64,000 bases of DNA, from the IMG/VR virus record IMGVR_UViG_3300037042_002125, positions 62,001 through 126,000 of that record. One strand, written 5' to 3'. Below the pieces are notes generated by a model. That model was not told where the DNA came from and made no database searches. It saw only the letters and a list, made by a program, of their open reading frames with translations. Both the position numbers and the translations under genes were made by a program. Shown piece by piece: positions 12,322 to 12,720 of this stretch; position 1 is the stretch's first letter; every line of letters begins with the position of its first letter.

Positions 12322-12720
12322 GAAAAAGGTGCCCAGCTTCAAGGGATGAAGGCTCCGTCGTTATCAGGAGGCTGGGCCAGATTCAGCTTACGCTAAACCT
12401 GCTTCACCGCGGGTGCCCTTTCAGGCAACCATGCGGAAGTTTTCGTCATTGGCGAGTACTTAATTGCCTACAAGTTTAACGAGCGTACAGACTAGCTCGG
12501 GTTGTCAGCATCCATTATCTACCGCTGTCGAAACCAGTGCACCCCCATCAGAAACATACTCGCGCCCAAGCTCATACCAACCTGTACACAGTCGGTCATC
12601 TAGCCTACGGGTCAGTTTAAGTAGGCTTTCCTTGAATACGTTTCTGGTGGAGGTGGCGGGAGTCGAACCCGCGTCCAGCAATCATTCACTTCTGCGTCTG
12701 TGCCATATCCGAAGAAACGA
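12322..12720 (-). ncRNA. ssrA: circularly permuted (two-piece) tmRNA, tag ANDENFRMVA*
   Basis: 3' acceptor end GGACGCGGGTTCGACTCCCGCCACCTCCACCA (ends 12645) precedes 5' end GGGGGTGCACTGGTTTCGAC (starts 12546); G3:U70 pair; tag 12453-12421; outer ends approximate. Confidence 0.92.

Follow-up and report, generated by a model that had tools for sequence, protein, structure and literature searches.

A circularly permuted (two-piece) tmRNA gene and its natural alleles in a freshwater/sediment jumbo myovirus

Introduction

The locus described here raises the question of whether a virus genome known from metagenomes carries a complete tmRNA gene in the circularly permuted form, with the acceptor end encoded ahead of the 5' end, and, if so, whether this gene works for the phage and how far it departs from the two-piece tmRNAs already known from bacteria and phages. 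The DNA analysed, here called the window, comprises 64,000 nucleotides and corresponds to bases 62001-126000 of a 222,078-bp IMG/VR virus record with an estimated completeness of ~93%. The original prediction, made from the letters of the window, placed a phage-encoded permuted tmRNA at 12322-12720, held such a phage copy to be unusual and easily missed by annotation, and named ARAGORN and the Rfam tmRNA models as checks.

The phage tmRNAs known by 2014 were only of the one-piece type and came from mycobacteriophages and Bacillus phage G (PMC4131195). By 2022 the two-piece ssrA of the OM43 phage Melnitz had been described, and a survey of 18,146 phage genomes had yielded 133 unique phage tmRNAs, 53 of which were two-piece (PMC9004378). 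The supplements of the tmRNA database paper contain no breakdown of phage forms. In addition, our scan of IMG/VR with one 22-nt motif returned 52 loci, ~40 of them with permuted tmRNAs, and more than 130 records of cultured phages match the tmRNA T arm, many of them annotated as tmRNA. With 53 two-piece molecules among the 133 and about 40 more permuted genes from a single scan, a permuted phage copy is not the rarity it was taken for. Two-piece phage tmRNA is already documented, and what is new here is a divergent example of the betaproteobacterial type, which leaves the picture of permuted tmRNA occurrence unchanged. The expectation that annotation would easily overlook such copies found one example in Alcaligenes phage vB_Af_QDWS595, but the window gene itself is detected by ARAGORN in its default mode.

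Results

A complete permuted ssrA gene

The window contains a complete circularly permuted (two-piece) tmRNA (ssrA) gene on the minus strand at 12322-12737, which was delimited with ARAGORN, RF04321 and RF01850 and consists of an acceptor piece, a spacer, a coding piece and a terminator-like end. ARAGORN reported a tmRNA of the class 'Permuted' at 12330-12737 with the tag ANDENFRMVA, and the Rfam model tmRNA_permuted (RF04321) matched a span from 12421 to 12707 with 85.3 bits against a cut-off of 47 (E 6e-15 for the 64-kb window). RF01850 (beta_tmRNA), the one retained among the clade-specific Rfam models, gave an end-to-end match at 12321-12751 (E 8e-21), yet its score of 70.6 bits falls below the curated cut-off of 84; the related L177 allele described below scored 75.3 bits and canonical members of the family 150-163 bits. 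Thus, both programs recovered the predicted phage-encoded permuted gene, with the reservation that on the Rfam side the general permuted model exceeded its cut-off, whereas the betaproteobacterial model covered the full length below threshold. Since the RF01850 alignment deletes or misaligns the outer P2 helix, this part of the structure was corrected by direct reading of the sequence. The limits proposed at first were right at one end only, as 12322 is the end of the terminator-like U-run, whereas a boundary at 12720 loses the outer P2 strand and part of the leader hairpin. Pairing of GGUUGU (12730-12725) with ACAACC (12505-12500) in the outer P2 helix requires the RNA to begin at 12730 or further upstream. 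A promoter scan found no sigma-70-like promoter on the strand of the gene, and a conserved 35-nt block upstream of it is found nowhere else in the genome and is thus not an obvious repeated phage promoter motif. Plain minimum-free-energy co-folding of the two pieces returned a non-native structure and was set aside, because pseudoknots are beyond this method.

The acceptor piece (12645-12730, minus strand), in which a script confirmed the helices of both alleles, contains the outer P2 5' strand GGUUGU, the partner of the coding piece, and then a leader hairpin at 12700-12723, a variable insert of the form GUGUCGUUUC-UUCG-GAUAUGGCAC with 9/10 pairs. It is followed by the P2a strand AUUGCU (12682-12677), the T arm GCGGG-UUCGACU-CCCGC (12672-12656) and, as read directly, the acceptor 3' strand CACCUCC (12655-12649), the discriminator A (12648) and CCA (12647-12645). 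The acceptor 5' strand GGGGGUG (12546-12540) lies downstream of CCA in the direction of transcription, that is, on the minus strand the CCA end at 12645 precedes G1 at 12546, exactly at the positions given in the original prediction. The tRNA-like domain comprises a 7-bp acceptor stem with 7/7 pairs, of which the third is the G-U pair G3:U70 that had been read as intact, together with the discriminator A, CCA and the T arm. Likewise, the intervening segment had been foreseen as ~98 nt with paired ends, and the spacer between 12644 and 12547 measures 98 nt; its closing stem joins CAGAAACGUAUUC (12646-12634) to GAGUAUGUUUCUG (12561-12549) with 13/13 pairs, 2 G-U pairs among them. The spacer forms a long hairpin that extends the acceptor stem (fold -52.1 kcal/mol, z -5.7 against shuffles) and is predicted to be removed in processing.

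The coding piece, delimited by ARAGORN, RF01850 and script-verified helices, runs on the minus strand from G1 of GGGGGUG at 12546 to 12322. It contains the D-loop-like GCACUGGUUUCGAC and the 3' strands of P2 at 12526-12521 and 12505-12500. Just upstream of the resume codon, the pairing at 12466-12499 on the minus strand suggests a PK1 pseudoknot, with a putative stem 1 CGAGC/GCUCG (12499-12495 with 12484-12480, 5/5 pairs) and a putative stem 2 formed by the loop GUCUG with UAGGC (12492-12488 with 12470-12466, 5/5 pairs). This pseudoknot can be drawn at equivalent places, from differing sequences, in both alleles, a comparison of two sequences with short stems. The tag frame called by ARAGORN at 12453-12421, GCC AAU GAC GAA AAC UUC CGC AUG GUU GCC UGA, opens with the alanine resume codon GCC, which is directly preceded by UACUC with an A at -4, and encodes ANDENFRMVA in 10 codons followed by UGA. 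The stop codon sits in the apical loop of helix 5 (12407-12436), an 11-bp helix built from CCGC/GCGG, GGU/ACC and GCCU/GGGC that was verified by script, as were the hairpins that follow it. A post-tag hairpin, CAGGUUUAGC-GUAA-GCUGAAUCUG, occupies 12378-12401 with 10/10 pairs, and a branched 3' terminal hairpin at 12322-12377 has the outer stem GCCCAGC/GCUGGGC and the inner stem CUCC/GGAG, followed by ACC-UUUUU-C. In its sequence this terminal structure resembles an intrinsic terminator, and a simple terminator scan made no call at the 3' end because the stem is branched.

Frozen cores and replaced modules between alleles

A second full allele was found on L177, a 6.7-kb metagenome contig that represents a syntenic piece of a related phage, with 86-89% identity to the window in the flanking DNA. 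Across the tmRNA gene, identity between the two is sharply bimodal. On the one hand, the 5' leader block (35/35), the acceptor-piece core at 12699-12646 (54/54), the 5' tRNA-like domain with its P2 strand (46/47), the resume context with the tag (39/41) and the 3' side of helix 5 (19/19) are almost invariant. The tag peptide ANDENFRMVA is identical, the single change inside the frame being the synonymous GUU to GUC and the other change in this block lying upstream of the resume codon, and helix 5 in L177 differs from that of the window by one unpaired U-to-C change. On the other hand, identity drops to 46% with a 10-nt indel in the leader hairpin, to 34% in the region upstream of the tag where PK1 is placed, to 26% of columns in the spacer and to 19% in the post-tag hairpin. 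Just upstream of the tmRNA leader, ~237 nt of the window (12761-12996) have no counterpart in L177, where the leader block abuts the preceding conserved segment.

The replaced segments of L177 still pair. Its unrelated 80-nt spacer is closed by CUAGUCCCA/UGGGACUAG (9/9 pairs) in place of the 13 pairs of the window; the leader hairpin, a 10-bp stem with a UUCG loop in the window, is GUGCC-GCAA-GGCAC (5/5 pairs); and the putative PK1 stems are CGGG/CCCG (4/4) for CGAGC/GCUCG and UGCG/UGCA (4/4) for GUCUG/UAGGC. In the terminal hairpin the inner stem CUCC/GGAG has become CACC/GGUG with both sides changed, and the outer stem keeps its pairing through G-U pairs. In the post-tag hairpin, the base of the stem persists with 8/8 pairs, two of them altered in both strands, and the tip is extended by an insertion of 60 nt. 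Indels of 10, ~19 and 60 nt exclude a protein-coding frame on either strand. The L177-type allele has CC followed by U in place of CCA, so that the last A would need to be added after transcription; the phage genome of the window encodes no CCA-adding enzyme.

Further variants came from contigs of four public runs (X1-X4), which are independent and belong to four studies. Two of them have the window allele, and one is of the L177-like second type, which is known from L177 and from contigs in further runs. In X3, a contig over window positions 12452-12675 is a mosaic in which the 98-nt spacer is exchanged for 79 other letters, as in L177, and which shares PK1 and the post-tag hairpin with the window; run X4 has the same 60-nt insertion at the post-tag hairpin. 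The mosaic points to recombination between alleles in nature, and the run alleles together indicate that modules reassort in the population with the core held fixed. None of the contigs of runs X1-X4 has a variant inside the tag frame. The covariation just described is based on two full alleles and fragments; on this basis the gene looks to be under selection and functional, because its cores are 95-100% identical against 86-89% for the flanks and because the replaced segments still pair.

The carrier phage

The carrier is a lytic-type jumbo myovirus from freshwater and sediment that is related to jumbo phages of Burkholderiales. Its head protein is closest to those of the jumbo myoviruses Burkholderia BcepSauron (56%), Ralstonia phiRSL1 (53%) and Achromobacter Motura (48%), and its topoisomerase II to that of 193-kb Rhizobium phages (55%), both matches being indirect pointers to the host; a search of IMG/VR with topoisomerase II peptides confirmed no close relatives of the phage. 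The tmRNA gene lies at 74.3 kb of the record with phage genes on both sides, near the genes for the two subunits of topoisomerase II, for a dCTP deaminase and for an acyl carrier protein, and the major head protein, the tail sheath and a lysozyme-domain protein are encoded further along the window. The locus turns up in public metagenome runs of several studies, which sampled sediment, freshwater and lake water. No tyrosine integrase and no SmpB were found in the genome, the latter making any function of the tmRNA dependent on compatibility with the host. The only tRNA of the genome is a tRNA-Met (CAU) at 11765-11842 of the window on the minus strand, ~480 nt downstream of the tmRNA; in L177 a tRNA-Met is located ~6 kb upstream of the tmRNA instead. 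Five cultured relatives that were tested carry neither a permuted nor a standard tmRNA, so that the gene is an acquisition of this phage lineage.

Several other features of the region were observed. A group I intron-like element at 15198-15595 on the minus strand (RF00028, 43.8 bits against a cut-off of 50, E 3e-9 in a 2.2-kb stretch) is kept in L177 at 3600-3995 with 43.1 bits. It lies between the small minus-strand ORFs 15789-16172 and 14851-15195, neither of which has a Pfam match, and may interrupt a phage gene adjoining the dCTP deaminase. Auxiliary genes unrelated to the tmRNA encode the acyl carrier protein (PP-binding, 41 bits; 13376-13624), a radical SAM-domain protein (35561-36580) and a glycosyltransferase (47429-48544).

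A gene of this kind could be a decaying passenger from the host or another phage, or the remnant of an attachment site, with no present function. Integration into tmRNA genes is common, prophages can contain fragments of ssrA (PMC9004378), and the lack of a tmRNA in the five closest cultured jumbo phages marks the gene as dispensable for this type of phage. However, the gene is complete instead of a 3' fragment, the genome has no integrase, the cores exceed the flanking coding DNA in conservation, pairing is kept through the replaced segments and the tag frame is intact in every allele seen, so that we regard such a passenger as very improbable.

Relation to bacterial and phage two-piece tmRNAs

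With the betaproteobacterial two-piece tmRNAs of Rhodocyclaceae such as Dechloromonas/Azonexus, Accumulibacter and Thauera, the window gene shares the order of acceptor piece, spacer and coding piece with the same break point, the acceptor stem GGGGGUG/CACCUCC, the D-loop-like CUGGUUUCGACAG, the outer P2 GGUUGU/ACAAC (GCAAC in the family description), the terminal hairpin and a 10-codon tag beginning ANDE-F. It differs from them in the 98-nt spacer as opposed to ~13 unshown positions in the model consensus, in the extra hairpin of the acceptor piece, in PK1 and the post-tag region, in the tag end RMVA instead of A[LIV]AA and in its place outside the chromosomal clade. A tree built from 72 permuted genes grouped the chromosomal genes of Rhodocyclaceae into one supported clade and paired the window with L177 (support 99) inside a loose set of almost exclusively viral genes, adjoining contigs whose tags end in YLKVA and FLKAA and near the gene of the Alcaligenes phage; the tree is a quick one from a sample defined by one motif, with a long-branch warning at the join of the window/L177 pair to its neighbours. 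In BLAST comparisons with 80 bacterial loci the window gene matched only in the universal 34-nt block of T arm and acceptor strand, and of 151 genomes sampled evenly across the order to which Accumulibacter belongs, only 4 had a strong permuted tmRNA. No bacterial donor emerged from a search for the exact 25-nt motif of the 5' domain, which is present in 0 of ~186,000 bacterial species genomes. Genomes of the Oxalobacteraceae type, with the loci L070 (metagenome-assembled Herminiimonas, G003), L096 and L130 (metagenome-assembled Noviherbaspirillum, G004), contain permuted tmRNA copies that score 84-111 bits and have unusual tags, for example ANDANYLVQVYG, plus a weaker match; the copies also fall outside the Rhodocyclaceae clade and may be prophage-borne second copies.

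These comparisons also bear on the idea that the contig is chimeric or misclassified and that a bacterial tmRNA has been mistaken for a phage gene. Proviruses with host flanks do occur in IMG/VR, and the tmRNAs of two viral contigs (L005 and L041) fall inside the Rhodocyclaceae chromosomal clade. The window gene, in contrast, stands outside that clade, lies 74 kb into a 222-kb record between phage genes, keeps the same neighbourhood in L177 as well as on contigs from other runs and has a 5' domain motif absent from the bacterial genomes, all of which makes a bacterial origin of the contig extremely improbable.

Like the described phage two-piece tmRNAs of Melnitz, pelagimyophages and cyanophages, the window gene is complete, permuted and carried by a lytic myovirus from an aquatic source that has no integrase (PMC9004378). 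The Melnitz tmRNA groups with alphaproteobacterial genes and has a glutamine riboswitch in its 3' domain, whereas the window gene is of the betaproteobacterial type and a riboswitch was not detected in it by Rfam. Beyond the tRNA-like domain no nucleotide similarity of the window gene to any phage record was found, and its best match among cultured phages is Alcaligenes phage vB_Af_QDWS595 with 77% over the 100-nt acceptor piece. The tmRNA of this phage (OK149171, Schitoviridae) likewise belongs to the betaproteobacterial type, scoring 93.8 bits with RF01850 and 111 bits with RF04321, and its tag, ANDNVYAAAA, also has 10 codons, but the phage is a 70-kb N4-like podovirus, the gene lies in a tRNA cluster, the tag ends in AAAA and the coding piece cannot be aligned by BLAST with that of the window. 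More distant are the one-piece tmRNAs of the mycobacteriophage Bxz1 group and Bacillus phage G and the tRNA-like-domain-only RNA of DS6A, which are likewise ssrA-derived and in need of host SmpB but are not permuted, DS6A in addition being without a tag frame (PMC4131195).

The gene of vB_Af_QDWS595, the example of a missed annotation mentioned above, is located at L002:2989-3365 (OK149171.2 ~55007-55354) in a gap without annotated feature, and the surrounding tRNA-gene cluster is likewise missing from the annotation of the record. At L002:3333-3409, ARAGORN called a tRNA with the anticodon UUA, which would read the stop codon UAA, overlapping the 3' end of this tmRNA (Rfam tRNA 41.6 bits), and the viral contig L033 has a CUA-anticodon tRNA near its tmRNA.

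A conserved, non-canonical tag

tmRNA tags have a hydrophobic, Ala-rich C-terminus that is typically LAA or AA, the terminal Ala-Ala being near-universal. The tags of the Rhodocyclaceae chromosomal two-piece tmRNAs found here follow the pattern ANDE[RQ]FA[LIV]AA. The phage tag equals them in length and shares the first half (ANDE-F), but its ending is RMVA, with MVA rather than AA at the terminus; a degenerate pattern of the tag coding sequence had no match in IMG/VR. In a screen of C-terminal pentapeptides in E. coli, FKLVA was the most enriched and had ClpXP kinetics like those of YALAA, proteolysis was promoted by an aromatic first residue and by Arg as the second, and tags ending in LVA and FKLVA were ClpXP substrates, while Arg is almost absent from proteobacterial tags (PMC10862746). 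The notion that a VA-ending tag might serve as an escape from ClpXP was dropped in view of this screen. By analogy with these related peptides, and with the provision that E. coli may not match the host of the phage, FRMVA is probably a competent, possibly strong, degron of the ClpXP type.

Discussion

At the sequence level, the locus has every determinant of a tmRNA, conserved and in the permuted order, and we consider it likely, with a probability of roughly 85%, that the locus is a functional permuted ssrA of a lytic-type jumbo myovirus with betaproteobacterial two-piece architecture. The established biology of two-piece tmRNA suggests how it would work. A single precursor would present the 3' acceptor strand with CCA first, then the hairpin spacer, and then the 5' acceptor strand, the tag frame and the terminator. 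Host RNase P would cut just 5' of G1 (12546) and host 3'-end processing would trim the RNA to CCA (12645), the final A being added in the case of the L177 allele. The spacer would be discarded, leaving two pieces, the acceptor one at least ~86 nt and the coding one ~225 nt long, that are expected to be held together by the acceptor stem and the P2 helices. Such processing has indirect support in the allele comparison, where the spacer varies freely and its closing stem is retained. After charging with alanine by the host AlaRS via G3:U70, the RNA would be delivered to stalled ribosomes by SmpB and EF-Tu of the host, translation would resume at GCC, and AANDENFRMVA would be appended to the stalled protein, its last five residues, FRMVA, acting as a ClpXP-type degron. 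The likely benefit for the phage is that ribosomes are kept free and truncated products are recycled during infection, similar to the role presumed for the described phage two-piece tmRNAs, namely maintaining the translation machinery or tagging proteins for recycling (PMC9004378).

An alternative that we judge unlikely, although clearly less so than a passenger gene, is that the phage tmRNA interferes with or replaces the trans-translation of the host by competing for SmpB and ribosomes and placing a phage-chosen tag on stalled products. Such a tag could alter the protease, the adaptor or the degradation rate for tagged products and blunt responses that rely on the host tag. As the phage has no SmpB, the host pool would have to be drawn on. 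The last four residues of the tag are unlike those of all Rhodocyclaceae tags found here and yet strictly conserved between the alleles, and the tRNA-like-domain-only tmRNA of phage DS6A resembles a molecule reported as a strong tmRNA inhibitor (PMC4131195). However, the tag frame, the resume context and helix 5 are all conserved, which would be needless for a pure SmpB decoy, and the likeness of FRMVA to an efficient ClpXP degron means that the outcome may equal that of the host tag.

A broader proposal, which we likewise put forward as doubtful, is that the window gene belongs to a largely phage-only radiation of beta-type two-piece tmRNAs that would combine a frozen catalytic and coding core with peripheral modules (spacer, PK1, hairpins) recombining among co-circulating phages and a retuned, non-host degron tag (FRMVA here, YLKVA in a tentative sister group). 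If true, this would mean that phages reprogramme the output of trans-translation rather than top up the tmRNA of the host.

In summary, the functional phage ssrA favoured here adds to the known cases a well-supported, divergent two-piece tmRNA from a jumbo phage of freshwater and sediment together with a natural allele series. The gene is of modest interest for its conserved non-canonical tag, the replacement of peripheral modules between co-circulating alleles and its absence from five cultured relatives. The FRMVA ending, non-canonical and yet conserved, poses a simple question about how the phage uses tagged proteins, and vB_Af_QDWS595, an isolated phage with an unannotated tmRNA, offers a culturable system for tests of tags. 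Moreover, the allele series separates what appears to be fixed in a two-piece tmRNA, that is, the tRNA-like domain, P2, the resume context, the tag and helix 5, from what appears to be freely replaceable, namely the spacer, the sequence of PK1 and the peripheral hairpins.
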